Part shown: piece after piece, positions 676 to 37,189 of the stretch
Layout of the letters: each line of letters begins with the position of its first letter
Position numbering within the stretch: position 1 is the first letter of the stretch
Origin: Macrostomum lignano
Lineage: Eukaryota
DNA: 37,189 nt
Direction of reading: 5' to 3'
NCBI GenBank assembly: GCA_002269645.1
Contig: NIVC01004715.1
Span: forward strand, 1 to 37,189
The notes under the pieces: model-generated
What the model was told of the DNA's origin: nothing
Databases searched by the model: none
The model's input: the letters and a program-made list of their open reading frames with translations, nothing else
Program-made: the position numbers and the translations under genes

Positions 676-702
676 AAAAAAGTCATGGCTTTGGGCGCTC
701 AC

Positions 703-3700: not shown

Positions 3701-6566
3701 CACACACTCGGACACCCAGCAGAAACTCACACACTCGGACACCCAGCAGAAACCCACACACTTGGACACTCAACAGCAGCTCACACACTCGGACACCCAG
3801 CAGCAGCTCACACATTCGGACACCCAGCAGCAGCTCACCCGCTCAATCACGCTGTCGAATCTCAGCTGCTCGACCTCTGGCCGGCTCAGGCGGTCCAGCA
3901 CGGCCTCCAGCAGGGCCGGCAGACGGTGGCCGAAGCCCTGAATGCTCAGCGAGATCCCCTCGGCGCAGGCGGCCAGGGAGGCGGACAGGCCGGCCAGCTG
4001 GGCGTCGTACAGCACCGGGTTGAGGGCGTCCGACATCAGCTGGCAGTGCAGCTGGGAGTTGGCCGCAGAAAATGCGTCGGACCAGGCGTCCGGCGTTGCC
4101 ATGACAACGGTGAGACAGAGCTTCGGCAGGCAGTACTGCGCGTCGGCCCGGTGCCAGAGCCGCAGGCCAGCCTCCTCCAGCACCACCCGGGGCGGCGGCG
4201 AGCCGGGCGGGGCGGCGATCAGGGCGAACTGGCTGGGGATGAACGGGTTGGGGTCCGGGAGGCGCAAGTCGGACAGGAGGCTGTCCGCCCCATCAGCAGG
4301 GGCGTCACCGTTGTAGAGAGCGAGGCAAGCGGCCAGAAGGTCGGGCGGCAGCGGCTGCAGGCGATGCCGGACTCCGTAAATCGGCTCGACGCAACCGTCG
4401 GGCGGGCAGTGCGGCTCGAAGGCCTTGGAGACGGCGAATACCTTGCAGCGGTGCGGGTGCAGCTGGTCCAGCACCTGCGGTAGCGAACGGATAAAGACCA
4501 GGGGCTGAGGATAAAGACTATTTAGAGAAGAAAAAAGCAGACTTAGAAGCAGGAAGGATTGTGGATAAAAGACCGCGTGAGAATTGCACTTGCCATACTA
4601 GCTCATGAATGCCAGCTCATAAATGCCAGCTCATAAATACCAGCTCATGAATGCCAGCTCATGAATGCCAGCTCATGAATGCCAGCTCATGAATGCCAGC
4701 TCATAAATACCAGCTCATGAAAACCATATAATGAATGCCAGCTCATGAATACCTGCTCATGAATGCCCGCTTATGAATGACTGCTTATGAATGCCAGCTG
4801 ATCAATGCCAGCTCATGAATGCCAGCTGATCAATGCCAGCTCATGAATGTCAGCTGATCAATGCCAGCTCAGGAATGCCAGCTCATGAATGCCAGCTCAG
4901 GAATGCCAGCTCATGAATGCCAGCTCAGGAATGCCAGCTCATGAATGCCAGCTCATGAATGCCAGCTCATGAATGCCAGCTCATGAATGCCAGCTCATGA
5001 ATGCCAGCTCATGAATGCCAGCTCAGGAATGCCAGCTCATGAATGACATCAAAGACGAACCTCAGCAATGAGCTCCGGGGCGAACTCGGTGACAAGGCAG
5101 TCGGCGGTGAGCAGCTGGGGCATCGGGTAAGTCAGCAGCCGCCTGGCCAGTCGCTGGGTGGCCTCGGCCGACGGCTCGCGGTCCCGGTAGCGAAAGGCCA
5201 GCGCCGCCAAGTCGCTGAGCTCGCGGTGCACCCAGGCCTGCGGCCCCGCCCGGCGCAGCTGCCCGACGCATTGGAAAACGGCGCGCAGGACGGCTGCCCG
5301 GTTGGCCAGGCCGGCCTCCGTGAGGTCCGCCGACACGCGGAAAAAGTCGAAGCCGGCGGCGCCGCCTCCGCAGCCGGCGGAGAGGCCGTTTGCCCAGCCG
5401 CGACGCTTCAGGCACGCCAGCAGGCTGCCCGCGGACTCGTGGCCAAGCAGGTGGCTCGCGTAGTGGGCCGGCTGGGAGCTGCAGAAGAACGAGGGGGAAT
5501 TATCAGTGATTGTCAGGAAGGGATTATCTGGGGTCAGGGATAATCGGAGGGATTATCAGGGAGGGATTATCAGAGAGGGATTATCTGTGATCAAGGATTA
5601 TCAGGAAGCAGCTCATCTGATCGAGGAAGCAGCTCATCGGGCCCACCTGAACTGCTCCGTGTAGTCCTTCATCGGAAAGACGACTTCGAGTTTCTGAATG
5701 TCCCGCAGCGGCACCATCTGTACCTCGACGCCGCAGTCAGTGCCGTCGTAGGGATGCGACTCCCAACTGGGCATCGGCAGCTGCTTGTTGGCGACGCCGG
5801 AGAAGGCGGCCACAATGAGCTGCTGAAGCTGGTCGAGCGACTCGCGGCCCAGAACCGCCACCGCGGTGAGGTTAGCCGAGTAATTCTCCGAGTGAAATTG
5901 CAGCAGTCGCTGGCGCAGCTCAGCAGCCTTGGAGGCGTCGGGCAGCAGGGTCTCCAGACAGCCAGTCGAGTATTTGCTGTAGTCGTGCTGCGGATTGGCC
6001 AGGTGGTGGTCCAGCCGCAGCAGCCGCCTGGCATCGATGGGGATGTTCTTGGCGTGCTCGGAGTGCACGGCGTTCACCTCGCGGACGGTGGCGGACTCGG
6101 TGAACAGCGGCTCGGTGAAGAACTGGCCGAGACGGTCCAGGGCCTCCGGCAGGTGCTCCGGCGCGATGTCGAAGTAATAGCGCGTGAACTCCGCCGAGGT
6201 GACGGCGTTGCGCACTCCGCCGTGCTCGTTGATGAAGCGCAGGAAACTGTTCTCATCCGGGTATCTGGCGGTGCCCAGGAACAGCATGTGCTCGCAGAAG
6301 TGCGCCAGGCCCTGCAAGCTGCGGGGGTCGCGCAACGCGCCGGTTCGAACGCAGGCAGTGGCCGCCGACTTGTCTGCGTCGGGGTCGCTGATCGCCACCG
6401 CGCGCAGGCCATTGGCGAGCAGCAGGCAGCGATAGCTGCGTCTGTCCTCCGTGGACTTTTCAATTTCATTCAGCACCAGCTGCGGGTTGCCTGTGGAGCT
6501 GCTGGATAAGTATCTGGATGCTGCAGCTGCACTGCCAGTGGCCGCTGCTGCCACTGTTCCTATCAT
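703..6566 (-). CDS. IDE: Insulin-degrading enzyme (insulysin)-like M16A metallopeptidase; 3' end lies outside the window
   Basis: Manual exons on the minus strand: 6566-5647, 5478-5061, 4474-3839, 3582-3462, 3351-3051, 1219-703. All introns are GT-AG and phases are consistent (2,0,0,1,2,2). The protein has the inverted zinc motif GLAHFCEHMLFLGT plus IDE-type blocks EVNAVHSEH, PAHYASHLLGHE, YRKSLKNFALEQP, FFNSLRTQQQLGY and FCVQSERHPAELESRIDEF. Exon 6 needs two +1 corrections (about 1183 and about 1051). Confidence 0.92.
1231..3006. repeat. 24-bp minisatellite (GTGTCTATTTAAATGTGTCCACAA) filling IDE intron 5
   Basis: About 70+ tandem copies. It explains the CVHKCLFK / NVSTSVYL / WTHLNRHL pseudo-ORFs. 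Each unit carries the palindrome ATTTAAAT. Confidence 0.98.
3645..3838. repeat. 27-bp minisatellite in IDE intron 3
   Basis: About 7 copies of CACTCGGACACCCAGCAG(A/C)A(A/G)C(T/C)CACA. On the gene strand the array begins at the 5' splice site (CGG|GTGAGCTG). Confidence 0.9.
4603..5045. repeat. 14-bp minisatellite (ATGAATGCCAGCTC) in IDE intron 2
   Basis: About 30 tandem copies, ending about 15 bp from the exon-2 donor. Confidence 0.95.
5500..5640. repeat. Short degenerate GGATTATCAG-type repeat in IDE intron 1
   Basis: Several GG(G)ATTATC motifs plus a doubled GGAAGCAGCTCATC. Confidence 0.6.
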
Positions 6567-6679: not shown

Positions 6680-9600
6680 CAGTGTTGCCACACCTGCGCT
6701 TTTTTAGCGCATCTGCGCTTTTTACAGTACCTGCGCTATTGCGCTTTTTCTGTTTCTTCTGCGCTAAATTTTTTTCTTGCTTTGTGTGACTGTAACTGAC
6801 GATTTTCTCATCAAAATTATGTACTTGCAAAGTTTTGTTAAGAGAATATATGACAATGGACGAATCGACAGCTTACTTTGCTCACTGGTTAACGAAACAA
6901 TGTGTTTTGCAACTTTCTGTTATTTTTCAGTCTCATTTTAAATAATTTTCTTTTTTCGTTACCTTTATTAGTAGTAGTTGAAGTGGTTTTGGATAGGTCA
7001 TAGGTGGGGCTCAATTGCTTTATTAAAGTAAAACCTAAATAATTTCAGCTGTAAAGCCTACTAAATGCGTGAAACCCAGTGGAATGCTGAGTGGTTAAAG
7101 AAGCTCGACAAGAATGGTCGAGTGATTGAAAGCTGGTGCTCTCTGGGGAAGCTCACTGGAGAAGCAGATTGTAACCTGTGCCGGACAAGCTTTTCATTCA
7201 CACAAAAAGGGCATTTCGGCTCTGTACCAGCACTCAATCACAGCAAAGCATGTTTCGCTCTCTAAATCGTGTCCAGGAAGTGTCACTGGGAGCCAGGCAC
7301 AGGCAGCTATCACATCATTTTTTGCAAGCCAGCCGCCAGTCACGTCAACTACTATAGCAACAGCAGCTCCACGGGCTGGTGATTTGACACTGGCTGCTTG
7401 TCTTCGGTTGCTTTTTGTGGTTGTCAAGAAGAATCTGTCAATCAGCGTAATGGACGAATTGGTGCCTGCGATGCCCGCAAGTTTTCCCGACAGCGGCATA
7501 GCGAAGTCAATGACATGTGGGCGAACAAAGGCAACCTACCTTATCAATGAGGCGCTTGCTCCATATGCCAAGGAGTCTATGCTGCAGACTCTGCGGCAGA
7601 ATCCCTTCTCTATACTGCTGGATGAAGGCACAGTGCGCGATCGATCTTGGCTTGTTGTTCTTTTTTTCAAGGGTTTTTTCAATCGAGCATAAGAAGGTGT
7701 TGCTCACTTTCGTTGGCCTGGAGGAGCTGAGAGATGCATCAGCTGAAGGACTAAAGACGCTGCTTTTGTCACTGCTTAAAACTGCAAAACTGCCGTTGCC
7801 AAACGTACTGTCAATAATGACAGATTCCTGCAATGCCATGCGAGGTAGACTAGTATACGAGCGTAAATAGTTAAATGCTTTACCACTACTGACGTAATGC
7901 GCACAGCAGTACAGTAACTGTATCACACTTTTCTTTCAGGTGCTCAAAATGGACTTCTTGCGAAGTTGAAGAGTCATCATCTGCCGCATCTCATTGATAC
8001 TGGCGGGTGTAGCCTACACCACGTCCACAACGCTGTCCAATATGCTGTGCATGCACTTGACAGCGAAGGTGAAGCGGAAGGTCTGATGGACGATGTGTAC
8101 AATTTTTTTCGCTTTTCTGGAAAGCGAGCTGAGTTAAAGGAGGTACGTTAAAAGTTTCCTTTTTAGAGGGCTAGACTAGAGGGCTGGCTGTGGGCCTGTT
8201 GCTGTCAGACGATATCCGGAATGATAAGCGATAATGTACTTTAATATTTTTATCATTTTAGCTGCAAGACGCTATGGACATTGCCCAGCACGTTTTTCTC
8301 CGACGCGTCGAGACTCACTGGCTGCAGGTGCTGCCTGTTGTACGACGTCTGTTGGAGCAGTGGCCTGTGCTACTGCAATTATTCTCCAACTTGAACACTG
8401 AGGCAATCAAGCTCAAGTCCCGGGCGCGTGCCCAGAGGATTAAGTCGGCATTGAACGACTCGGTCAAGGCCCAGCTCCAATTTCTGGAGCAAGTTCTTAC
8501 GCACTGCGAAGCTTTCGAGACAGTCTTTCAGCGCGAAGCAACGCAAGTTCATCAGCTGGCGAGCACTCTGGACAGTCTCTGCAGCAAAATTCTTATGAGC
8601 TTTGTCTCCGAAGACGTTGTTCGCGATACCAGGTCCCTAACTGACCTGGTAAACAAGGCCAAAGAGCGTGGCTCCCAGGTGCAGAATACGAAGTTAGCAA
8701 TCGGAAGCGCTACTCGAGAGACGGTCAAAAAGTTGTCCGCAATAGAACAAATCGGATTCTACAAGAGTGTCCGAGACTTTTATGGAGAGATCATCAATCG
8801 GCTGTTTTCCTACTTGCCACTCAATAACCGCGTTCGGCATGCGATGTCTTTTCTCGACCCCAAAGTAATCACGGGGGTTGAGTTCGATTTCGATAAAACA
8901 GTCTTGCGCGCCACTAAAGCAATGCCTACTGTCATTCCACCGGAACAGCTGGACAATTTGCGAATTGAGACAACGAGCCTTCGGGTCAGCTCATCTGAAG
9001 CTGATTTCGATGACGGTTTGATTCCTGAGCATTTCTGGTCTCAGTTGTCTTCTGAGAAATATCCGCTGTTGACTAAGCTTGCCCAGAGTGCTTGCTGTAT
9101 TCCACATGGCAATGCCGACAGCGAGCGTGTGCTGAAGTGGGTGTCAAGCAACCTGACTAAAGAGTGCAACAAGCTCAGCGATGTCACCCTAGATTCGCTG
9201 CTGACTGTCAAGACGTGGCTCAAGCTCTCAGTTGGTGTCAGTTGGGTGTTGGAAGTTATGATCACTCCCACACTACTTGAAGCCGGATTTGCGGCTTGTG
9301 TGAAGGCAGATGACTGGGAAGAACAAGGAGAAAATGGCCAAGTTTCAGGCTGAGCTAGATAAGCACCGGCGTGATGTGGCGGAGTGGGAGAAGGCGGCAG
9401 AAAGGGATCGGCTGGAGCAAGAAGATATGGTGCGGCAGCAGCAAAACATCGATGAGATGCGGAAGCAGGCACGGGAGATGCTTGCGCAAGCAGACCAGCA
9501 AGAGGGCATTTTGAGGAAGAGCACCAGTCGTAGTTCTAGTAATGCTGTTAATCAGAAGAAGCAGCGTAGGAACTAGAAAGTAAATTAGCAAAGTGCTTTG

Positions 9601-15279: not shown

Positions 15280-16134
15280 TCGTATAAACCATAGACATTA
15301 AGACTTTGTGGGATATTATTGAATATTACCAAATAAAATCCCGGAGAACGCAAATATTGTCACAGAAAGTCTTTATTTCTATGGATTATTTTTATTTAGT
15401 CTTTATGGCTACATCATGGCAAGATAAAAAGAGTCAAAAAGTGAGTAGTGCCTTAGAACTTGTTAATAGCCTAGCAATTATCCCATGTAGGCCTAGTGTA
15501 TCTCTAACTATAATATTATTGATGTAATTGTCCAGTTATCAAATAGATAGTATACTAGCCTTAGGCATAGGTGTAGGCTGCATTCTGTAAGGCAATGAGC
15601 ACAGAGCACTTATAGCTCGTATTTGCTGTTGGTCCATAGGCTAGTGTTAGGCTAGATGGAGATTCCACTGAAGCCTGATATCAATTGCCTATATTTTGTT
15701 TTTTTATTCAAATTATTTTAGTTATTAAATTCAGTTGGGGTGCGCTCCTCCCATAGAGTTTTCTTTATTTTTTATATAGAAAATACACATTATTGTGTAT
15801 ATATACATGTACATGATATAAATATACATGTACCTTAGTAATCTGCACCCCCCCTCATTCAAAATTTTCTGGATCCGTACCTGCTGACTGGTAATTCACT
15901 AAGCCATCCATGCATCTGCATCTGCTTTTCTAGCTTCCCACTGTGGCAGCTCAGCTCTAGCAGTTTTTGACAGTCTGAGTAATTCCTGCCACTCCAATGC
16001 GCACCGCCTGGCCCAGTGCCAACTGCTGGCGTTGACCGTCCTCTGGCCAGTCCATTTTGCTGCTCCAACCAGGGCCTGCACCTGGACACCTGTGCGGAGT
16101 CTGGCAGTTGGGCCTCGCAGGCCAAGTCAGCCAG

Positions 16135-19029
16135 ATGTCCACTCTGCAGGGCGGCAACGGGAGCGGCGGCGTCGGAGGTGCGGGGCTACCCGAGCACATC
16201 TTGGTGCTGCACTCCGGCGACAAGCTGGTCCGCTGCGCCGCCTACATCGGCTCCTTCCCGGTGGAGGGCGCCGACCAGCGGCAGCGGACGGAGTTTGTCC
16301 ACCAGCAGCTCGAGGCGATGCAGGGCTGCGGCCGGTCCCGGCCCGTGCAGCTGTGGATCGCCCTGACTGGCGTCAAGGTGTGCGACCACACTGGGGAGCA
16401 GGTGAGCGGCCGCTTTTATAGCATTTGAAAAGATTTGAGCTTGTGAAAGAGACCAGCCACAGGCCACCTCCAGCCACAGACCATCTCCAGCCACAGACCA
16501 TCTCCAGCCACAGACCATCTCCAGCCACAGACCATCTCCAGCCACAGACCATCTCCAGTCACAGACCATCTCCAGCCACAGACCACCTCCAGCCACAGAC
16601 CATCTCCAGCCACAGACCATCTCCAGCCACAGGCCACCTCCAGCCACAGACCACCTCCAGCCACAGACCACCTCCAGCCACAGACCACCTCCAGCCACAG
16701 GCCACCTCCAGCCACAGACCACCTCCAGTCACAGACAACCTCCAGCCACAGGCCACCTCCAGCCACAGACCACCTCCAGCCACAGACCATCTCTGTAAAT
16801 TGTCACAGAATCCGCATCCCCAAGCCAGCACTGAGCGACCCTTCGGCCCGCAGGTGCTGATGGCGCACGCCCTTCGCCGCATCTCCTACGCGAACTGCAA
16901 CCCGGACCACCAGCAGTTCGCCTTCATGGCCCGCGAGCCCAAGACGCAGGTCAGTCTGCAGTATTGCCACGCCTTTGTCACGGACAGCGCTCAGCTGGCC
17001 GAGGAGCTCAACAACCTGCTGGGCGACTGCTTCAAGCTGGCCTACGCGCTGCAGCAGCAGCAGGAGCAGCGAAAGAAGCAGCAACAGCAGCAACAACAAC
17101 AGCAGCAGCAATTGCAGCAGCTCCCGCCGCCGCAGCCGGCTCCAACCGCCCAGCAACTGCTGATGAACGATCCCACCCTCGGCGCCCCTAATCGAGTCGG
17201 TAGCAACAGCGGCTTGCCCAGCAGCCTTGACTACCTGCGCCGCATCAACGCCTTTGCCCTTAGCAACGCTTGCGGCGGCCGCCAGCCCGCCCAGCCGTCG
17301 GCCCCCGGCGCCCCGGTGGAGAATTTCCGGTCCGCCTACGGCAACCCCGTCATCGTGCTGAAGGAGTGCATCGACCAGTCCGTGACATCCGGCGGCGGAA
17401 TCCTGGTTGGTCCCGCCGCTTTGGCTGCCGGCGGCAGCGGCGGTCGGGACACCGTGGACGCCCCGACCATCGGCAGGAACCTTGTGAACAACAACGGCTT
17501 CTCCGTTGGCACTGCGGCCCCCTCTGCTACCGATGTGGAGTCTCCGCCGCCGCCTCTGCCGCTTCGGTGAGAACTTTTTGTGCCTTGGCTGCTTTGAGGC
17601 ACCCACGAATCCTCGGGGCTTCCTCGTGAAGGGTCTGATCTGAGTTTCCTCATGAAGGGTCCAATAAAAGCTGGGTTTCCTCATGAAGGATTTGATAAAA
17701 GCTGGGCTTCCTCATGAAGGGTTGATGAAAGCAGGGTTTCCTCATGAAGGGTGCGATGAAAGCAGGGTTTCCTCATGAAGGGTCTGATGAAAGCAGGGCT
17801 TCCTCATGAAGGGTGTGATGAAAGCTGTGCTTCCTCATGAAGGGTCTGGTGAAAGCAGGGCTTCCTCATGAAGGATATGATGAAAGCAGGGTTTCCTCAT
17901 GAAGGGTCTGATGAAAGCAGGGTTTCCTCATGAAGGGTCTGATGAAAGCAGGGCTTCCTCATGAAGGGTGTGATGAAAGCAGGGTTTCCTCATGAAGGGT
18001 CTGATGAAAGCAGGGTTTCCTCATGAAGGGTCTGATGAAAGCAGGGCTTCCTCATGAAGGGTGTGATGAAAGCTGTGCTTCCTCATGAAGGGTCTGGTGA
18101 AAGCAGGGCTTCCTCATGAAGGATATGATGAAAGCAGGGTTTCCTCATGAAGGGTCTGATGAAAGCAGGGTTTCCTCATGAAGGGTCTGATGAAAGCAGG
18201 GCTTCCTCATGAAGGGTGTGATGAAAGCTGGGCTTCCTCATGAAGGGTGTGATGAAAGCTGTGCTTCCTCATGAAGGGTGTGATGAAAGCTGTGCTTCCT
18301 CATGAAGGGTCTGATCAAAGCAGGGTTTCCTCATGAAGGGCCTGATGAAAGCTGGGCTTCCTCATGAAGGGCCTGATCAAAGCAGGGTTTCCTCATGAAG
18401 GGCCTGATGAAAGCTGGGTTTCCTCATGAAGGGCCTGATGAGCAATTCCACTTTCTGCTCCTCCCAGTTACGACAGCCTGCGACCCTCTTCCTCCGACCG
18501 CACCCTGGAGCCGCCGCTGTCCTCTGAGCTGACCCCGGCAGCCTGGTATCAGGCCGACCTGCCCCGCGACCTCGCCCTCGAGCTGCTCAGCCGCGAGGAG
18601 ATCGGCGGCTTCATCGTCCGGGACAGCAGCACCCACGTGAACTGCTACGCCTTGTCCGTGCGGGTGCCGCGCCAGGACAACCCGTCGGGCTACGCGCACT
18701 ACCTGATCCAGCGCACCGCCAGGGGCGTCAAGCTCAAGGGCCTCCCCAAGGAGTGGCCCAGTCTGCAGTCGCTGGTGTGCCACCTGTCCGTGATGCCGGA
18801 GATGCTGCCCTGCCCGCTGCGGCTGCCCAGGCAGCAGGAGAACCCCATCTACTCCGAGCACCCGCCCGTCCCGCCCGGGGCTGGGGGCAGCGGAGGTGGC
18901 GGGCCAGCGAACCCGGAACCGGAGGATCTGGCGGGCCAGGCGTGCCCCTACGGCTTGAACCTGCCACCCGATGAAGACTATCAGAGACTGTCCGACTTCA
19001 GCTCCATCATGGCCGAGCTGCGAGTCTGA
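16135..19029 (+). CDS. SH2D5: PTB + SH2 domain adaptor, SH2D5-like (~513 aa)
   Basis: Exons 16135-16401, 16854-17566 and 18468-19029, GT-AG, phases 0 and 2. The PTB domain (YIGSFPV...VLMAHALRRISY...FAFMAREP...YCHAF) matches recalled SH2D5 motifs. It is followed by a polyQ linker (about 17052-17122) and a C-terminal SH2 (WYQADLPRDLALELL...GGFIVRDSST...YALSVRV...WPSLQSLV). An additional upstream exon cannot be excluded (acceptor-like CAG at 16118-16120). Confidence 0.85.
16453..16792. repeat. 17-bp minisatellite (CCAGCCACAGACCATCT) in SH2D5-like intron 1
   Basis: About 20 tandem copies. Confidence 0.95.
17620..18440. repeat. 31-bp minisatellite (TTTCCTCATGAAGGGTCTGATGAAAGCAGGG) in SH2D5-like intron 2
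   Basis: About 26 copies. A variant block recurs at 248-bp (8-mer) spacing (17821 and 18069). Confidence 0.96.
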
Positions 19030-19157
19030 TAGAGATTTCATTCAGTTGCCGATATGTATCGAAACTCGCGTAAATGTAGGCGATTTTTTACACATCAGAA
19101 TCGATTTTGCAGTACAGGCGGAGCCGGGCCAGTAAATTTCAAGCAATCTCTGACTGC

Positions 19158-24775: not shown

Positions 24776-25138
24776 CTAGGTGACTGTAAAGCCGCCTGTG
24801 TCCTGGCAATTTAAAGAGCACTGCTGAGCATGACTAATCAGATAAGAGTTCAATTCAAAAGCACTGCTGAGCATGACTAATCAGATAAGAGTTCAATTCA
24901 GTTTAGCTCAGTTTAACAATCAAGCGAGCACTTGCGTTATATTTGTAAGATTAAAATATTTACTGTTGCGTTCGCATCTTGGCTCCATTCTGCTTTTGGA
25001 AGCAAAAGCCACAACGACAACTTGGACGCTCAATAGCGGATCATCCCAGAGACTTTGGGGAGTTTGCGCGTCCTCAGATGTCCATCATCAACTTGCTTAG
25101 GTTACACAGTGATGGCGCAACTGCCCGCTCGGCACCTG

Positions 25139-25723
25139 TCAATCTTCGTCGGCGGACTTTCCAGCAGTCTCGACGTCGGTGCCGGTCATTCCGGCGGCCG
25201 ACGAAGATTTCCGACTCGGTGCCATCAGGCTGGCCGCGGTGCCCGCGCAGGCCAGGAGACAGCCGGCGGCCACGAGGCCTACGGACAGCACGCGCCCGCG
25301 CACAGGCAGCTGCGGAGTCGAGCCCAGCTGTTGGATAGCAAAACAGCCGAAGCCAAGCATCAGGAGGCCGACGCCGATGCACAGAATGGCGATCGGGAAG
25401 TACTCGCAGTACGGGCCCCAGCGCCAGCTTCCGATGCCGGAAGATGTCGCTGCAGACGGTTGTGGCGACTTTGACTGCTGCGGCGAATTTGCAGTTTGAA
25501 GCAGACACAGGCGTTCGGCTTTGATCCCACTGCTGACCCCATCGCACGCACCAGAGCCACCAGCTTCCTTTGCAGCCCTGGCTTCATAGAACTGCTGCAG
25601 GTAGGACCTCACTTTGATTGGTTTTCTTCCGCCTTTCCTGAAATTTTTGTCAAACAATAGAAGCATTAAAAGCATCCGAAGAATTTGTTAGATGAATAAT
25701 CGAAACAGTCAGACTTACGGCAT
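25139..25723 (-). CDS. NRSN: Neurensin-like two-TM vesicular membrane protein (copy A, ~167 aa)
   Basis: ATG CC|G splice: exon 25723-25719, 81-bp GTAAGT...TTTCAG intron, exon 25637-25139. This gives MPKGGRKPIKVRSYLQQFYE..., matching the neurensin signature VRSYLHQFYE. Two hydrophobic helices follow (YFPIAILCIGVGLLMLGFGCFAI; VLSVGLVAAGCLLACAGTAASL). Confidence 0.82.
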
Positions 25724-26358
25724 GCCAGCCCTGGGAATAAAGCTCTGTGGATTAGAAACCGAAGCCAGACTCGGGCGCAGCAAGGTTCTCAGCTGCCACG
25801 GTATTTCAGCCGCTCAATCGGACAGGAAATCTTCGGATTCGGACATTTCTGCTGAGCGCTTCTGTGGCCAATCAAAGCCGAGTGGCATCTGGTCCGCGAT
25901 TTTCAGCGCCCATAAATCGCAGATGGGCGCTGACTGGGAAAGCAGAAACATGCTGACAGGCTCCGAAAAAAAGACTGCAAGACCCATTTGATTTCAGAGG
26001 TTCAGCTGATCTTATCGCTTCTGACCTATAAAAAGTTTAGACTGATCGTGCACGAAGTCAATTATTCGCGTGAGTTGACCTCGGGGGGGGGGGGGGCAGG
26101 AGGCTTCTGTCGAACTGCAATGGGATACGCAGCAGACTCTCCTGCGCTCTCGCCGGCTTATCGAAAATCCCAGTCCAGACTGAGTGACATCCGTCAAAGT
26201 GACATGAAATCCGAGCTGCTGCAGTCGCCAATCAAAGTGTCTCGGCTGCACAGGTCGCTGGCCCGATAGTATTAATGCGCCTCTCCGACAGGCACTAACG
26301 TTTTCCTTGTCGTTTTAGCTCGAATTCGACACATTTTTAGACTTCTTCCTCTGTTGGG

Positions 26359-29300
26359 ATGAAGTCGACTTTGGTTTGCAGGCTCGGCTTCGCGCTTCTG
26401 TGCTTCGCCTGTCCGCTGCAGTGCGCGCTGCCTCAGAAACTCTGTGAGCCTCTGTTACCTGCTCCTGCTTCTGGCACTGGCTGTTGCTGCCTCTGGCACT
26501 GGCTGCTCCTGCTTCTGGCACTGGCTGTTCCTGCCTCTGGCACTGGCTGCTCCTGCCTCTGGCACTGGCTGCTCCTGCCTCTGGCACTGGCTGCTCCTGC
26601 TTCTGGCACTGGCTGTTGCTGCCTCTGGCACTGGCTGTTGCTGCCTCTGGCACTGGCTGTTGCTGCCTCTGGCACTGGCTGCTCCTGCCTCTGGCACTGG
26701 CTGTTGCTGCCTCTGGCACTGGCTGTTGCTGCCTTTGGCACTGGCTGCTCCTGCCTCTGGCACTGGCTGTTGCTGCCTCTGGCACTGGCTGTTGCTGCCT
26801 CTGGCACTGGCTGTTGCTGCCTCTGGCACTGGCTGCTCCTGCCTCGGATTATACTGTTCTTGATTCTATTAATATCTACCTATCAATGCTCCTGGCAATT
26901 GCTGCTGATGCTAAAAGAATCTGACTGAATGTAAAGGCTTTTGTGGCATCAATAGATTTCTCTGTGAGACCTGAGAGCTCAATAAGTTCACCTTCCGCCC
27001 ATCAACTCCAGGCTACTCAGGTCGCATCTCCGCGGCCGTCCTCGCTCCGGCCATCATCGGTGACCCAAGTCCGGTGCCGAAGCTGCCGGTCACGGAGTAC
27101 AGCAGCGAGCACCACTGCCTGTTCCAGCTCCACGCGCGGATCTTCCTCACCTGGCGCCAGGCCGCCGAGTTCTGCGCCCTGTTCAACGCCACGCTGCCGG
27201 TGCTGCGCACCCAGTTCGCCTGGCAGACTCTGCGCAGCTACGCCCAGAACCATCGCATCTGGGTTGGCGTGGTGCGCGCTGAAGGTGCGGTGCGCGAGGG
27301 CTCTCAGAGTGCCAGTGATTTTCACTCTGCTAGGCTGCAAAAAACGGTTTTCAGGTTCGCAACCACTCTCCTATTCACTCGAACCCCTGACCAACCAAAC
27401 CTTAACTCTGACCCCGTCTCACAAACCTAGATCGGGATCCTTTGATTCTCTCCCTGTTTCACCCCTGACCCACCAACCTCATCCCTGACCCATCAATCTC
27501 ACCCCTGACCCACCAACGTCATCCTTGACCTATCAACCTCACCCTTGACCCATCAACCTCACCTCTGACCCACCAACCTCACCCCTGACCCACTTAACTT
27601 TTCCTTTATTCACTTGCTTGACTCTTGCCTTGAACCCACCGGTCCTGAAACCAGAATAAGTCTCGCTACTGACCCGCCCCTAACCCACCCTTCAACGTCC
27701 TCATCAAGAAACCACTGTCCAGTTCAGGCCCCCGTCAGACCCTAGCCTGGCTCGAGTCTGTCAGACCCGAGCCTGGACGCTGTCTGACCCGAGCCTGGGC
27801 GCTGTCTGACCCTTGATCTCTGTCTGACCCGAGCCCGGCCTCTGTCTGACCCGAGCCTGGCCTCTGTCTGACCCGAGCCTGGCTGCTGTCAGACCCGAGC
27901 CTGGCCGCTGTCAGACCCGAGCCTGGGCGCTGTCTGACCCGAGCCTGGGCGCTGTCTGACCCTCGATCTCTGTCTGACCCGAGCCTGGCCTCTGTCTGAC
28001 CCGAGCCTGGCCGCTGTCAGACCCGAGCCTGGGCGCTGTCTGACCCGAGCCTGGGCGCTGTCAGACCCGAGCCTGGCCGCTGTCTGACCCGAGCCTGGGC
28101 GCTGTCTGACCCGAGCCTGACCTCTGTCTGACCCGAGCCAGGCCTCTGTCTGACCCGAGCCTGACCTCTGTCTGACCCGAGCCTGGCAGCTGTCTGACCC
28201 GAGCCTGGCCTCTGTCTGACCCGAGCCTGACCTCTGTCTGACCCGAGCCTGGCAGCTGTCTGACCCGAGCCTGGCCTCTGTCTGACCCGAGCCTGACCTC
28301 TGTCTGACCCGAGCCTGGCAGCTGTCTGACCCAGCCCCTCAGTTTCACCCGTCAACGCCGATCCCGCAGCAGCTGGTGACCAGGACCTGTGGCGCTGGTA
28401 CACCGACGGGCCCGAAGAGCCGCCGCTGAGCACCAGCGATTTCAGCCGGACCGACAACCGGACCGGCGTCGAGTGGAGCCGCTCCGAGCCCAGCAACGCC
28501 CACTGCGGCGAGGCCTGCGGAGTGGTGAACTACGATGGCAACCTGGCGGACTACGCCTGCGCCACTGTGCCGCCCTGGGACCCTTGCGGCGACGAGTCGC
28601 ACGTGGTGCGCACCGTGTGCCAGCGCTCCGGGCTGCCAGGTCTGCCATCTGGGGCGATGGGGAACTCATGGAATTGCTAATTGCTTATGGAGCATTTTGA
28701 AAGGTTAAATAGACACTTATGGTTGCAATTCGGGATCAGGGATGGCAATTCGGGATCAGGGATGGCAATTCGGGATCAGAGATGGCAATTCGGGATCCGG
28801 GATGGCAATTCGGGATCAGGGATGGCAATTCTGGATCAGGGATGGCAATTAGGGATCAGGGATGGCAATTAGGGATCAGGGATGGCAATTCGGGATCAGG
28901 GATGGCAATTAGGGATAAGGGATGGCAATTAGGGATCAGGGATGGCAATTCGGGATCAGGGATGGCAATTCGGGATCAGATTCGGGATCTGAGATTACTA
29001 TGCGATTCGGGATCTGAGATTACTATGCGATTCGGGATCTGAGATTACTATGCGATTCGGGATCAGAGATTACGATTCGGGATCTGAGATTACGATTCGG
29101 GATCTGAGATTATGATTCGGGATCTGAGATTACTATGCGATTCGGGATCAGAGATTACTATGCGATTCGGGATCTGAGATTACGATTCGGGATCTGAGAT
29201 TACGATTCGGGATCTGAGATTATGATTCGGGATCAGAGATTACTATGCGATTCGGGATCTGAGATTATGATTCGGGATCAGAGATTACTATGCGATTCGG

Positions 29301-30652
29301 GATCAGAGATTACTATGCGATTCGGGATCTGAGATTATGATTCGGGATCTGAGATTATGATTCGGGATCTGAGATTATGATTCGGGATCTGAGATTACGA
29401 TTCGGGATCTGAGATTACGATTCGGGATCTGAGATTATGATTCGGGACCTGAGATTACTATATGATTCGGGATCTGAGATTATGATTCGGGACCTGAGAT
29501 TACTATACGATTCGGGATCTGAGATTATGATTCGGGATCTGAGATTATGATTCGGGATCTGAGATTATGATTCGGGATCTGAGATTATGGTTCGGGATCT
29601 GAGATTATGATTCGGGATCTGAGATTATGATTCGGGATCTGAGATTACTATATGATTCGGGATCTGAGATTACGATTCGGGATCAGAGATTATGATTCGG
29701 GATCTGAGATTATGATTCGGGATCAGAGATTACTATGCGATTCGGGATCTGAGATTACTATGCGATTCGGGATCAGAGATTACTGTACGATTCGGGATCT
29801 GAGATTATGACTCGGGATCTGAGATTATGATTCGGGATCTGAGATTATGATTCGGGATCTGAGATTATGATTCGGGATCTGGGATTATGATTCGGGATCT
29901 GAGATTATGATTCGGGATCTGAGATTATGATTCGGGATCTGAGATTATGATTCGGGATCTGAGATTATGATTCGGGATGTTTGCATTGATTTTCCATACA
30001 TGAATTTCAGTTTGCCGGTACCAGCGAGAGCCGCCTGTTGTTCCTACTCAGAGGGATTTCTATATAATCATAGCCGGCACTTTTGCAGGAAAGAAAAATT
30101 TACAATCTACTCGTACTCTGCATGTTGCAATTCAGACAGTTATGAGCCTGGACCCAATCCACTTCCCCTGACCAACATCTCCGCCCTCACCCTCAACCGG
30201 AATCCTTGCATTCGGGTTCCCGCACTCCCCGAGAATTATGAGCTGCATGTACATCTTCATCTCGTATGGAAATTTTACGAGTACATCCTTAATGTATGTG
30301 CCTACTTGTAAAATCGATTAGTAGCTCTAATCTGCTCCCAGGTGTCCTATACATGCATGTACATGCACATGATTTCTCAGTTTCCCATGAGTTTCTCTAG
30401 ATCTTCTCAATCCAGATTTACTTGACTTAGAGAGAGTAGACTAGCTCTGTTGTATGTTCTGTGTACAATCTATACAGGTACACATTTTTAATCAAGTTCC
30501 CACACTTAAGCATAAATATAAATTTAATCAAAGTTGCTTCATCAAAAATAATTTCAGGGCTTCTTAGCGGCACGGGCTTAATATTGTTTCTGCGCCTGAT
30601 CGCGAAGGCAGTCAACAAGAAGACCCGGCAGGTGAAGCTGCCGGCTGCTTAA
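26359..30652 (+). CDS. Type I membrane C-type lectin domain protein (copy A, ~263 aa)
   Basis: Exons 26359-26443 (signal peptide MKSTLVCRLGFALLCFACPLQCA), 27021-27284, 28370-28639, 30011-30088 and 30558-30652, all phase 1. CTLD motifs: TWRQAAEFC, IWVG, WRW, W..SEPSN, EAC, LADYAC, VCQ. TM FYIIIAGTFAGLLSGTGLILFL with a basic tail. Exons 1-3 are well supported; the exon 4-5 join needs a GA donor. Confidence 0.78.
26455..26845. repeat. 22-bp minisatellite (CTGCTCCTGCCTCTGGCACTGG) in lectin intron 1; duplicated at 32042-32432
   Basis: About 18 copies; source of the ASGTGCCCLWHW / PEAATASARG pseudo-ORFs. Confidence 0.95.
27455..28332. repeat. Two minisatellites in lectin intron 2 (CTCACCCCTGACCCACCAAC-type 27455-27600; 22-bp CTGTCTGACCCGAGCCTGGCCT 27735-28332); duplicated at 33042-33919
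   Basis: Tandem units are visible, and both share a TGACCC core. Confidence 0.92.
28729..29977. repeat. Compound 20/25-bp minisatellite in lectin intron 3 (TCGGGATCAGGGATGGCAAT then GATTCGGGATCTGAGATTAT); duplicated at 34316-35564
   Basis: The unit switches at about 28980; both halves share ATTCGGGATC(A/T)G. Confidence 0.96.
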
Positions 30653-30726
30653 TTAAGTTTTTATAACGTCCATCATCAACTTGCTGAGGTTACACAGTGA
30701 TGGCGCAACTGCCCGCTCGGCACCTG

Positions 30727-31311
30727 TCAATCTTCGTCGGCGGACTTTCCAGCAGTCTCGACGTCGGTGCCGGTCATTCCGGCGGCCGACGAAGATTTCC
30801 GACTCGGTGCCATCAGGCTGGCCGCGGTGCCCGCGCAGGCCAGGAGACAGCCGGCGGCCACGAGGCCTACGGACAGCACGCGCCCGCGCACAGGCAGCTG
30901 CGGAGTCGAGCCCAGCTGTTGGATAGCAAAACAGCCGAAGCCAAGCATCAGGAGGCCGACGCCGATGCACAGAATGGCGATCGGGAAGTACTCGCAGTAC
31001 GGGCCCCAGCGCCAGCTTCCGATGCCGGAAGATGTCGCTGCAGACGGTTGTGGCGACTTTGACTGCTGCGGCGAATTTGCAGTTTGAAGCAGACACAGGC
31101 GTTCGGCTTTGATCCCACTGCTGACCCCATCGCACGCACCAGAGCCACCAGCTTCCTTTGCAGCCCTGGCTTCATAGAACTGCTGCAGGTAGGACCTCAC
31201 TTTGATTGGTTTTCTTCCGCCTTTCCTGAAATTTTTGTCAAACAATAGAAGCATTAAAAGCATCCGAAGAATTTGTTAGATGAATAATCGAAACAGTCAG
31301 ACTTACGGCAT
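30727..31311 (-). CDS. NRSN: Neurensin-like protein (copy B)
   Basis: Same structure as copy A: exons 31311-31307 and 31225-30727. The native 3' flank is cut 59 bp after the stop by the duplication junction. Confidence 0.8.
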
Positions 31312-31945
31312 GCCAGCCCTGGGAATAAAGCTCTGTGGATTAGAAACCGAAGCCAGACTCGGGGCGCAGCAAGGTTCTCAGCTGCCACGGTATTTCAGCC
31401 GCTCAATCGGACAGGAAATCTTCGGATTCGGACATTTCTGCTGAGCGCTTCTGTGGCCAATCAAAGCCGAGTGGCATCTGGTCCGCGATTTTCAGCGCCC
31501 ATAAATCGCAGATGGGCGCTGACTGGGAAAGCAGAAACATGCTGACAGGCTCCGAAAAAAAGACTGCAAGACCCATTTGATTTCAGAGGTTCAGCTGATC
31601 TTATCGCTTCTGACCTATAAAAAGTTTAGACTGATCGTGCACGAAGTCAATTATTCGCGTGAGTTGACCTCGGGGGGGGGGGGCAGGAGGCTTCTGTCGA
31701 ACTGCAATGGGATACGCAGCAGACTCTCCTGCGCTCTCGCCGGCTTATCGAAAATCCCAGTCCAGACTGAGTGACATCCGTCAAAGTGACATGAAATCCG
31801 AGCTGCTGCAGTCGCCAATCAAAGTGTCTCGGCTGCACAGGTCGCTGGCCCGATAGTATTAATGCGCCTCTCCGACAGGCACTAACGTTTTCCTTGTCGT
31901 TTTAGCTCGAATTCGACACATTTTTAGACTTCTTCCTCTGTTGGG

Positions 31946-34900
31946 ATGAAGTCGACTTTGGTTTGCAGGCTCGGCTTCGCGCTTCTGTGCTTCGCCTGTC
32001 CGCTGCAGTGCGCGCTGCCTCAGAAACTCTGTGAGCCTCTGTTACCTGCTCCTGCTTCTGGCACTGGCTGTTGCTGCCTCTGGCACTGGCTGCTCCTGCT
32101 TCTGGCACTGGCTGTTCCTGCCTCTGGCACTGGCTGCTCCTGCCTCTGGCACTGGCTGCTCCTGCCTCTGGCACTGGCTGCTCCTGCTTCTGGCACTGGC
32201 TGTTGCTGCCTCTGGCACTGGCTGTTGCTGCCTCTGGCACTGGCTGTTGCTGCCTCTGGCACTGGCTGCTCCTGCCTCTGGCACTGGCTGTTGCTGCCTC
32301 TGGCACTGGCTGTTGCTGCCTTTGGCACTGGCTGCTCCTGCCTCTGGCACTGGCTGTTGCTGCCTCTGGCACTGGCTGTTGCTGCCTCTGGCACTGGCTG
32401 TTGCTGCCTCTGGCACTGGCTGCTCCTGCCTCGGATTATACTGTTCTTGATTCTATTAATATCTACCTATCAATGCTCCTGGCAATTGCTGCTGATGCTA
32501 AAAGAATCTGACTGAATGTAAAGGCTTTTGTGGCATCAATAGATTTCTCTGTGAGACCTGAGAGCTCAATAAGTTCACCTTCCGCCCATCAACTCCAGGC
32601 TACTCAGGTCGCATCTCCGCGGCCGTCCTCGCTCCGGCCATCATCGGTGACCCAAGTCCGGTGCCGAAGCTGCCGGTCACGGAGTACAGCAGCGAGCACC
32701 ACTGCCTGTTCCAGCTCCACGCGCGGATCTTCCTCACCTGGCGCCAGGCCGCCGAGTTCTGCGCCCTGTTCAACGCCACGCTGCCGGTGCTGCGCACCCA
32801 GTTCGCCTGGCAGACTCTGCGCAGCTACGCCCAGAACCATCGCATCTGGGTTGGCGTGGTGCGCGCTGAAGGTGCGGTGCGCGAGGGCTCTCAGAGTGCC
32901 AGTGATTTTCACTCTGCTAGGCTGCAAAAAACGGTTTTCAGGTTCGCAACCACTCTCCTATTCACTCGAACCCCTGACCAACCAAACCTTAACTCTGACC
33001 CCGTCTCACAAACCTAGATCGGGATCCTTTGATTCTCTCCCTGTTTCACCCCTGACCCACCAACCTCATCCCTGACCCATCAATCTCACCCCTGACCCAC
33101 CAACGTCATCCTTGACCTATCAACCTCACCCTTGACCCATCAACCTCACCTCTGACCCACCAACCTCACCCCTGACCCACTTAACTTTTCCTTTATTCAC
33201 TTGCTTGACTCTTGCCTTGAACCCACCGGTCCTGAAACCAGAATAAGTCTCGCTACTGACCCGCCCCTAACCCACCCTTCAACGTCCTCATCAAGAAACC
33301 ACTGTCCAGTTCAGGCCCCCGTCAGACCCTAGCCTGGCTCGAGTCTGTCAGACCCGAGCCTGGACGCTGTCTGACCCGAGCCTGGGCGCTGTCTGACCCT
33401 TGATCTCTGTCTGACCCGAGCCCGGCCTCTGTCTGACCCGAGCCTGGCCTCTGTCTGACCCGAGCCTGGCTGCTGTCAGACCCGAGCCTGGCCGCTGTCA
33501 GACCCGAGCCTGGGCGCTGTCTGACCCGAGCCTGGGCGCTGTCTGACCCTCGATCTCTGTCTGACCCGAGCCTGGCCTCTGTCTGACCCGAGCCTGGCCG
33601 CTGTCAGACCCGAGCCTGGGCGCTGTCTGACCCGAGCCTGGGCGCTGTCAGACCCGAGCCTGGCCGCTGTCTGACCCGAGCCTGGGCGCTGTCTGACCCG
33701 AGCCTGACCTCTGTCTGACCCGAGCCAGGCCTCTGTCTGACCCGAGCCTGACCTCTGTCTGACCCGAGCCTGGCAGCTGTCTGACCCGAGCCTGGCCTCT
33801 GTCTGACCCGAGCCTGACCTCTGTCTGACCCGAGCCTGGCAGCTGTCTGACCCGAGCCTGGCCTCTGTCTGACCCGAGCCTGACCTCTGTCTGACCCGAG
33901 CCTGGCAGCTGTCTGACCCAGCCCCTCAGTTTCACCCGTCAACGCCGATCCCGCAGCAGCTGGTGACCAGGACCTGTGGCGCTGGTACACCGACGGGCCC
34001 GAAGAGCCGCCGCTGAGCACCAGCGATTTCAGCCGGACCGACAACCGGACCGGCGTCGAGTGGAGCCGCTCCGAGCCCAGCAACGCCCACTGCGGCGAGG
34101 CCTGCGGAGTGGTGAACTACGATGGCAACCTGGCGGACTACGCCTGCGCCACTGTGCCGCCCTGGGACCCTTGCGGCGACGAGTCGCACGTGGTGCGCAC
34201 CGTGTGCCAGCGCTCCGGGCTGCCAGGTCTGCCATCTGGGGCGATGGGGAACTCATGGAATTGCTAATTGCTTATGGAGCATTTTGAAAGGTTAAATAGA
34301 CACTTATGGTTGCAATTCGGGATCAGGGATGGCAATTCGGGATCAGGGATGGCAATTCGGGATCAGAGATGGCAATTCGGGATCCGGGATGGCAATTCGG
34401 GATCAGGGATGGCAATTCTGGATCAGGGATGGCAATTAGGGATCAGGGATGGCAATTAGGGATCAGGGATGGCAATTCGGGATCAGGGATGGCAATTAGG
34501 GATAAGGGATGGCAATTAGGGATCAGGGATGGCAATTCGGGATCAGGGATGGCAATTCGGGATCAGATTCGGGATCTGAGATTACTATGCGATTCGGGAT
34601 CTGAGATTACTATGCGATTCGGGATCTGAGATTACTATGCGATTCGGGATCAGAGATTACGATTCGGGATCTGAGATTACGATTCGGGATCTGAGATTAT
34701 GATTCGGGATCTGAGATTACTATGCGATTCGGGATCAGAGATTACTATGCGATTCGGGATCTGAGATTACGATTCGGGATCTGAGATTACGATTCGGGAT
34801 CTGAGATTATGATTCGGGATCAGAGATTACTATGCGATTCGGGATCTGAGATTATGATTCGGGATCAGAGATTACTATGCGATTCGGGATCAGAGATTAC

Positions 34901-36239
34901 TATGCGATTCGGGATCTGAGATTATGATTCGGGATCTGAGATTATGATTCGGGATCTGAGATTATGATTCGGGATCTGAGATTACGATTCGGGATCTGAG
35001 ATTACGATTCGGGATCTGAGATTATGATTCGGGACCTGAGATTACTATATGATTCGGGATCTGAGATTATGATTCGGGACCTGAGATTACTATACGATTC
35101 GGGATCTGAGATTATGATTCGGGATCTGAGATTATGATTCGGGATCTGAGATTATGATTCGGGATCTGAGATTATGGTTCGGGATCTGAGATTATGATTC
35201 GGGATCTGAGATTATGATTCGGGATCTGAGATTACTATATGATTCGGGATCTGAGATTACGATTCGGGATCAGAGATTATGATTCGGGATCTGAGATTAT
35301 GATTCGGGATCAGAGATTACTATGCGATTCGGGATCTGAGATTACTATGCGATTCGGGATCAGAGATTACTGTACGATTCGGGATCTGAGATTATGACTC
35401 GGGATCTGAGATTATGATTCGGGATCTGAGATTATGATTCGGGATCTGAGATTATGATTCGGGATCTGGGATTATGATTCGGGATCTGAGATTATGATTC
35501 GGGATCTGAGATTATGATTCGGGATCTGAGATTATGATTCGGGATCTGAGATTATGATTCGGGATGTTTGCATTGATTTTCCATACATGAATTTCAGTTT
35601 GCCGGTACCAGCGAGAGCCGCCTGTTGTTCCTACTCAGAGGGATTTCTATATAATCATAGCCGGCACTTTTGCAGGAAAGAAAAATTTACAATCTACTCG
35701 TACTCTGCATGTTGCAATTCAGACAGTTATGAGCCTGGACCCAATCCACTTCCCCTGACCAACATCTCCGCCCTCACCCTCAACCGGAATCCTTGCATTC
35801 GGGTTCCCGCACTCCCCGAGAATTATGAGCTGCATGTACATCTTCATCTCGTATGGAAATTTTACGAGTACATCCTTAATGTATGTGCCTACTTGTAAAA
35901 TCGATTAGTAGCTCTAATCTGCTCCCAGGTGTCCTATACATGCATGTACATGCACATGATTTCTCAGTTTCCCATGAGTTTCTCTAGATCTTCTCAATCC
36001 AGATTTACTTGACTTAGAGAGAGTAGACTAGCTCTGTTGTATGTTCTGTGTACAATCTATACAGGTACACATTTTTAATCAAGTTCCCACACTTAAGCAT
36101 AAATATAAATTTAATCAAAGTTGCTTCATCAAAAATAATTTCAGGGCTTCTTAGCGGCACGGGCTTAATATTGTTTCTGCGCCTGATCGCGAAGGCAGTC
36201 AACAAGAAGACCCGGCAGGTGAAGCTGCCGGCTGCTTAA
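31946..36239 (+). CDS. Type I membrane C-type lectin domain protein (copy B)
   Basis: Exons 31946-32030, 32608-32871, 33957-34226, 35598-35675 and 36145-36239. AATAAA signals follow the stop at about 36274-36286, supporting the terminal exon. Confidence 0.78.
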
Positions 36240-37189
36240 TTAAGTTTTTATAACGACCAGGATACCGTGATTAAAATAAAAAATAAAACTATAATTATAA
36301 CCTTGAAATTTACAAATAGTTCAATGTTTTGAGTACAAATTCTCGAAACTAAACAGGTAAAAAATAAAATGTGGTTGTATGAATCGATGACTTCATATTG
36401 TTTATCTAAACCAACGTTAAACACAGCAGGAAGCGCTGTAGCTGCGTTCCGTTGCATCACTATTCAACTTGAAAAAAAATAAATATGCATGCAAAATGTG
36501 AGACCGTGAAAGTTTATATACAGCAGTAAAACTGCAGCTTGGAAAAGATTTTGGTCAAGTTCCAGCTCGATACGAGCGCACGTGTCTAACTGGTGCTCCG
36601 AGTCAGGAGCGATTTTCGATGTGCACCACTTGTTTTATTTGTTCCATATGCGTTCCTTGTAAATCAGGATGGTCTATGCTCAATCTGGAACAACGCCAAC
36701 CTCTCGATCGGGGCGGTCAGCTAGTGGGGCTTCGGACTGCAGGACCGCCCTCAGCAAACAAAGGCAGCCTAAACAGTATGCGAATATTGATCATTATTTC
36801 ACTACTAATGGGGTGAATCGGTGAAAGAAATGCGTGAACAGAATTGAAGGCGATGGACGATTGCATGATAGCAGGCCATCATGAGAGGCGCTTCAAAAGA
36901 CTGTATGAAATTTCACAATGCCGAAAACTAAAAAATGCAGCATATTTATTGAATACGAATTTTGTTCGAGCATGTTGGCATGTTGCTTGTCATGTCGGCG
37001 TATCGCTAGTAGAGTGAATTGATTAAACTGTAAGATCGCAGTTTTACACTTTCATAACACTAACCAAGGACGACTTAAGTAGGACGGGAAAACCTCGTTT
37101 TTAGAAAATTTTTAGAAGGCAGGTTTTCTAACGAGCGGGCTGGGGGTGGGTGCACGATACAAGCGTAATTCAGGCTAGCATAATATATG

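Follow-up and report, generated by a model that had tools for sequence, protein, structure and literature searches.

GA splice donors are very rare outside two animal lineages, and a +2 T>A change mostly abolishes splicing at a donor (PMC5714493; PMC12805630). In the copepod Eurytemora affinis and the appendicularian Oikopleura dioica, GA donors, backed by RNA-seq, account for 3-12% of introns (Robertson 2017, PMC5714493; Frey & Pucker 2020, PMC7072748), while only 14 of 222,263 human introns carry one (PMC5714493). An AG at the end of the exon and an A at +3 are described as near-obligate for genuine GA donors (PMC5714493; PMC7072748). The GA donor of vertebrate FGFR1-3 is reported to need a canonical GT lying 6 nt before it (Brackenridge et al. 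2003, cited by PMC7072748 and PMC5714493). Among human +2T>A donor variants, of which ATM c.6347+2T>A is one of the leaky ones, one of six assayed in minigenes gave any full-length product, at 12%, and the other five gave 0% (PMC12805630). Flatworms are absent from those supplements of PMC7072748 that were consulted, and the literature that we searched holds no report of GA donors or non-canonical splicing in Macrostomum or flatworms.

The site described here, in a C-type lectin gene of the flatworm Macrostomum lignano, is another instance of a known phenomenon, a non-canonical or mutated splice donor. It lies in a window of 37,189 nucleotides (contig NIVC01004715.1, assembly GCA_002269645.1), to which all positions refer unless another contig or locus is named. 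With the GA (and GG) donors of E. affinis and O. dioica it shares the G at +1, the A at +2, the AG exon end, the A at +3, the AG acceptor and gene predictions that stop short; it differs from them in being a single (duplicated) site known from the genome sequence alone, in a setting where 12 of 12 other donors read and both relatives have GT. As described for FGFR1-3 in the sources consulted, a conserved coding junction would be served by GA-AG in an otherwise ordinary spliceosome, but the 6 nt before 30089, and indeed the whole exon end ACTTTTGCAG, contain no GT. The likeness to the ATM c.6347+2T>A type is that of a derived +2 T>A in an otherwise strong donor, although the human variants were assayed in minigenes and the lectin donor is a flatworm site read from sequence alone.

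On the plus strand, five exons with all junctions in phase 1 join into an open reading frame of 801 nt, or 266 aa, in what we call lectin copy 1 (a slash marks the exon-intron boundary):

26359..26443, plus strand: exon 1, encoding the signal peptide MKSTLVCRLGFALLCFACPLQCALPQKL plus 1 nt; donor TCT/GTGAGC
27012..27284, plus strand: exon 2, first half of the C-type lectin domain; donor AAG/GTGCGG
28370..28639, plus strand: exon 3, second half of the lectin domain, ...TVCQRSGLP plus 1 nt; donor CAG/GTCTGC
30011..30088, plus strand: exon 4, 78 nt, phase 1/1, V-CRYQREPPVVPTQRDFYIIIAGTFA + G, encoding the stalk and the first half of the transmembrane (TM) helix; acceptor aatttcag
30089..30557, plus strand: intron 4, 469 nt, 40% GC, no satellite, beginning GAAAGA and ending aataatttcag
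30558..30652, plus strand: exon 5, (G)LLSGTGLILFLRLIAKAVNKKTRQVKLPAA, with the stop TAA at 30650-30652

The product reads, in order, as a signal peptide, a C-type lectin domain, a short stalk, a TM helix and a short basic tail. The Pfam Lectin_C family (PF00059) matches residues 75-188 with E=5.6e-8 (33.9 bits against a cut-off of 22.6). With the EPN/QPD and WND motif positions of C-type lectin domains as reference, the Ca2+/sugar-binding EPN or QPD motif plus WND is absent from the lectin domain; EPS and LAD stand at the corresponding places, and carbohydrate binding is therefore not implied. Joined in phase 1, exons 4 and 5 give DFYIIIAGTFA-G-LLSGTGLILFLRLIAKAVNKK, and the resulting C-terminus, ...DFYIIIAGTFAGLLSGTGLILFLRLIAKAVNKKTRQVKLPAA, includes a run of 22 residues without charge (Kyte-Doolittle 19-residue mean 2.03), after which come basic residues. 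The features expected of a type I protein, namely a signal peptide, a C-terminal helix of ~20 residues and basic residues after it, were found together only in the GA-AG-joined product, with the tail KAVNKKTRQVK. Third-position G+C is 0.46 in exon 4, 0.88-0.89 in the lectin-domain exons and 0.72 in exon 5. The phase-1 junction of exon 1 falls in a Cys codon, as it does in exon 1 of a paralogue described below (CGT/GTAAGT).

Each of lectin introns 1-3 consists largely of minisatellite sequence of its own (26465-26845, 27459-28336 and 28725-29978, with counterparts in the second gene copy): the repeat unit is a 22-mer in the first, the second combines a 40-mer with a 22-mer, and the third has two 20-mers, whereas intron 4 is free of such repeats.

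Protein searches with the product of the lectin gene recovered, for the gene itself, only genome-derived models that end at exon 3. The UniRef entry A0A1I8G8U9 (M. lignano, C-type lectin domain-containing) is 99% identical over query residues 29-209, corresponding to exons 2-3, and both it and its close relative A0A1I8HKR3 (P0002) stop at ...CQRSGLP, the end of exon 3. These models choose an alternative donor for exon 2, CCA/GTGATT after 27314, 30 nt downstream, which adds GAVREGSQSA, and their first 98-110 residues are an antisense translation of an adjacent minus-strand gene:

30697-31062 (plus) / 30727-31263 (minus strand): region of the adjacent minus-strand gene, whose 178-aa open reading frame has two hydrophobic stretches and weakly matches DUF3995

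The two UniRef models are chimeric and poor, lacking exons 1, 4 and 5. Exact look-ups of P0001, P0002, P0003 (the paralogue introduced next) and the 178-aa minus-strand reading frame returned no record.

A word-indexed protein search found only the gene's own UniRef model, and exhaustive HMMER and profile searches were needed to reach a paralogue. The HMMER search identified the M. lignano protein A0A1I8HBV4 (P0003; 261 aa, 47-48% identity), and the profile search added the NCBI protein BOX15_Mlig007782g1 (P0133), whose locus, on NIVC01000921.1 of GCA_002269645.1, we call L002 (the gene model at L002 10001-12581). The alignment with A0A1I8HBV4 is gapless from the lectin domain through the junction (TFA-G-LLSG against TFA-A-LIGC), the window gene reading VCRYQREPPVVPTQRDFYIIIAGTFAGLLSGTGLILFLRLIAKAVNKKTR where the paralogue reads VCRYTSNPPAIPTPHDYYIIVGATFAALIGCAGAVLGVRLIVKTLERRDQ, and exon 5 pairs with the paralogue's LIGCAGAVLGVRLIVKTLERRDQ. 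Two further exons 4 could be delimited at the DNA level:

L002 11035-11112: exon 4 of the paralogue, 78 nt, phase 1, V-CRYTSNPPAIPTPHDYYIIVGATFA + G; donor CCG/GTAAGT
Logan contig L001 (run DRR639838) 2043-2120: exon 4 of a distant homologue, 78 nt, phase 1, DCIWHTEPTPIIFGQDWYIVLAITFG + T; donor GAT/GTGAGT

The three exon 4 sequences align column for column up to the donor, and the introns beyond are unrelated; in L002, exon 5 follows the acceptor ttttgcacag. From this comparison, 30088/30089 is the ancestral intron position, and joining it to 30558 restores the helix of the family. Because the paralogue (GTAAGT) and the distant homologue (GTGAGT) both carry GT, the ancestral donor dinucleotide was GT and the GA is a derived +2 T>A, accompanied by an A at +6. 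Besides the 78-nt exon 4, the paralogue has in common with the window gene a signal peptide, a lectin domain, a CRY...P stalk, a TM helix split in phase 1 and a charged tail; it differs in its donor (CCG/GTAAGT), in having no lectin-domain intron and in a longer acidic/basic cytoplasmic tail. The missing intron (27285-28369 in the window), in place of which L002 10184-10718 encodes an uninterrupted domain, reflects a gain or loss of an intron within the family.

The first-pass annotation had placed exon 4 at 30011-30088, with exon 5 starting at 30558 after a TTTCAG acceptor in phase 1, and had expected the joined exons to encode a 22-residue hydrophobic helix followed by basic residues; direct reading and homology bear out all of these coordinates, and the hydropathy and the gapless paralogue alignment bear out the helix. 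It had further noted that the donor deviates from consensus at +2 and +6 only, and that an in-phase GT near 30113 is weak and would interrupt the helix. Both observations hold: CAG/GAAAGA, with intron 4 opening on G30089 and A30090 followed by AAGA, agrees with CAG/GTAAGT at 7 of 9 positions, and the homologous exons 4 end at the equivalent of 30088, so that neither the GT at 30113 nor a GC at 30077 is the native boundary.

Under uniform base composition, a random sequence would reach at least 6 of the 7 matches outside +1/+2 with a chance of ~0.0013, a figure that calls for no correction for multiple testing because the position of the site was fixed by homology. The energy of the duplex with U1, -6.3 kcal/mol, is the best in the gene, whose own GT donors range from -4.4 to -5.8 kcal/mol, and the AG at -2/-1 and the A at +3 are both present. 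The 12 other M. lignano donors that we read, a small sample, are all GT (3 in the lectin gene, 3 in the paralogue and ~6 in an insulin-degrading-enzyme gene of the window). When all GT, GC and GA donors were combined with AG acceptors across 30030-30640, no canonical pair matched the homologue-supported junction.

Several special mechanisms were considered and rejected. U12-type introns have the 5' site /RTATCCTT and a branch site TCCTTAAC 10-20 nt from the 3' end; here the donor is GAAAGAAA, and the only CTTAAG lies ~55 nt from the acceptor. A shifted U1 register at the GA donor was rejected from the sequence, and A-to-I editing would yield GG, not GT. An Rfam scan of the whole window gave no match, hence no snRNA to inspect.

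Three further positions bear on what an altered donor would produce:

30077..30078, plus strand: cryptic in-phase GC, CCG/GCACTT; its use would delete GTFA and leave an 18-22 residue helix; U1 energy -1.7 kcal/mol
30113..30114, plus strand: cryptic in-phase GT, CTC/GTACTC; its use would add 8 codons and break the helix (GKKNLQSTR inserted); U1 energy -0.9 kcal/mol
30168..30170, plus strand: stop codon that would end translation of an intron-4-retaining transcript; its product terminates in ...FAGKKNLQSTRTLHVAIQTVMSLDPIHFP and lacks a TM helix (Kyte-Doolittle 19-residue mean 0.68)

With its 78 nt, exon 4 can also be skipped in frame, in the lectin gene and in the paralogue. In the exon-4-skipped product, ...RSGLP-G-LLSGTGLILFLRLIAKAVNKK, the hydrophobic stretch comprises 12 uncharged residues, or 16 if R-LIA is included, and the Kyte-Doolittle 19-residue mean is 1.65. 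P0133, the transcript-based model that NCBI gives for the paralogue, leaves exon 4 out, reading ...HRSDIE-A-LIGSAGAV..., and the UniRef model of a near-identical paralogue copy keeps it, which suggests either an alternative cassette exon that changes the length of the anchor or an annotation artefact. Since the NCBI model skips exon 4 despite a perfect GTAAGT donor, this exon may be weakly defined in the lectin family regardless of the donor. A secreted form arising by intronic polyadenylation was rejected, as intron 4 contains neither AATAAA nor ATTAAA.

The lectin gene is present twice in the window, within a head-to-tail duplication:

25080..30667: duplication unit 1, 5,588 bp, containing lectin copy 1 and, on the minus strand, the 3' exon of another gene
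30668..36259: duplication unit 2, 99.911% identical to unit 1
31946-32030, 32599-32871, 33957-34226, 35598-35675 and 36145-36239, plus strand: exons of lectin copy 2, offset by 5,587 downstream of the poly-G indels
35676..36144, plus strand: intron 4 of lectin copy 2, with GA at 35676-35677, identical to that of copy 1
36270..36287, plus strand: poly(A) signals after copy 2, ATTAAA at 36270 and AATAAA at 36282, 30-42 nt past the stop

The units meet at TATAACG/TCCATC (the slash here marking their junction), 16 nt past the stop of copy 1, and differ by two mismatches near their ends and by homopolymer (poly-G run) indels, with no interior substitution over ~5.5 kb. The first-pass annotation had cited GA in both copies; the dinucleotide is indeed there in each, but, because the copies are 99.9% identical tandem duplicates, the second GA is not an independent observation, and for the same reason the age of the GA change cannot be read from the two. 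A recent mutation and a functional GA donor would alike be expected to keep AAG at +3 to +5. With the unit junction 16 nt beyond its stop, copy 1 is without the native poly(A) signals, and neither AATAAA nor ATTAAA occurs for ~600 nt after that stop. The duplication likewise strips the native 3' flank from the second copy of the minus-strand gene. The 5,588-bp duplication could be a very recent event or an assembly artefact.

Elsewhere in the window, coding blocks of 60-65% G+C stand between satellite-filled introns, and three other loci were recognized:

699-6566, minus strand: orthologue of insulin-degrading enzyme (IDE), with the HFCEH zinc motif encoded in its large first exon; the donors read are all GT
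7126-9353, plus strand: reading frames matching the hAT-family C-terminal dimerisation domain of Pfam (E=4.6e-7); a hAT transposon, or a domesticated copy of one, is probable
about 16000-19030, plus strand: gene whose product matches Pfam PTB/PID (E=1.4e-6); it also has a poly-Q tract, and its reading frame stays open through a 17-nt repeat (16453-16793)

The IDE introns hold 14-mer, 27-mer and 24-mer satellites (4600-5045, 3649-3838 and 1231-3006). At ~1041-1060 on the minus strand, a conserved IDE exon changes frame, reading ...QQLGYLVQLAE and then RAAGVAACGLSFCVQSE; this apparent 1-nt indel is either an assembly error or the mark of a pseudogene copy. Downstream of the PTB/PID domain, a reading frame resembles SH2 by eye and has no Pfam match, and an assignment of the gene as a Shc-like adaptor is only a guess.

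We give a probability of about 0.5 to the reading in which the GA donor is impaired, with exon 4 skipped or intron 4 retained and leaky GA use at most. A conserved phase-1 intron splits the coding sequence of the TM helix, its GT has become GA in the lectin gene and its tandem twin, and an ordinary U2-type spliceosome would be expected to use such a donor poorly. By one route, exon 4 would be skipped in frame, leaving a short hydrophobic segment of 12-16 residues in an isoform like that annotated for the paralogue; by the other, intron 4 would be retained and translation would end at 30168, giving a soluble form. Exact GA-AG splicing with the full 22-residue anchor would then account for a minor, leaky fraction at most. 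The first-pass annotation had offered, as its alternative, a T>A donor mutation that converts a receptor into a secreted form. The GT of the relatives favours the derived T>A, but we judge it more likely that exon 4 is skipped in frame, the commonest consequence when a donor is dead and one that the annotation had not weighed, than that a solely secreted form results. The genome of M. lignano is that of a hidden polyploid (PMC5730564; PMC10468722) of high redundancy, and disabling changes would therefore be tolerated. What speaks against impairment is that all five lectin exons are intact, that the GA flanks are the gene's best match to U1 (7/9, -6.3 kcal/mol), that AG at -2/-1 and A at +3 are reported features of working GA donors, that donor requirements may be relaxed in M. 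lignano, and that the paralogue model without exon 4 may reflect a minor isoform or faulty annotation.

Much of the same evidence would suit an intron whose CAG/GAAAGA donor is spliced efficiently, yielding the full type I receptor with its 22-residue TM helix: the junction matches the helix of the paralogue without a gap, the AG before and the A at +3 recall the GA donors of E. affinis, O. dioica and man, complementarity to U1 outside +2 tops that of the gene's other donors, exons 4 and 5 are intact, and the cryptic canonical donors are very weak. Such splicing is conceivable but doubtful, given that both relatives carry GT at the site, that +6 is off consensus as well, that none of the 12 other donors read is GA, that GA donors have the rarity and +2T>A changes the consequences outlined at the outset, that the literature searched is silent on flatworm GA donors, and that no helper GT of the FGFR type lies 6 nt upstream. 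The first-pass annotation had proposed to inspect the donor of the orthologue in sister species; here the paralogue locus and the Logan homologue have the same boundary but do not conserve the GA. A move of splicing to the GC at 30077, with loss of GTFA, or to the GT at 30113, with a gain of 8 residues, is improbable. Both donors are in phase with the acceptor at 30557, and the GC variant would retain a hydrophobic stretch (Kyte-Doolittle 19-residue mean 2.25), but U1 pairing is very poor at either, GC donors usually require a near-perfect context, and use of the GC would delete TF residues that are invariant in three homologues. Still less probable is an error of base calling or assembly, with GT in the true genome and an artefactual tandem duplication. 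The copies differ solely by homopolymer indels and two end mismatches, and these indels, together with the apparent 1-nt frameshift of the IDE gene, indicate that consensus errors exist in the assembly; however, the errors seen are indels and not substitutions, the ~5.5-kb interior is free of substitutions between the copies, and, as +6 differs from the T of the paralogue, a second substitution error would be needed if T is ancestral.

The five-exon structure, which is wrong in the public UniRef models, thus appears to be that of a gene for a type I C-type-lectin membrane protein. Should the GA donor be functional, M. lignano would be a third animal lineage tolerating GA donors, beside the copepod and the appendicularian, and its gene models would be truncated at such sites, as happened in E. 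affinis. We regard it as unlikely that M. lignano splices GA-AG introns, with the lectin gene as the first recognized flatworm case and models that miss the exons after such donors. If, as in the impaired-donor reading that we prefer, the GA donor fails, the site would be an ordinary recent donor mutation in a redundant tandem lectin gene of a polyploid genome, with the membrane anchor shortened or lost. Either way, the comparison settles the predicted structure of the gene, five exons encoding a putative type I membrane lectin.
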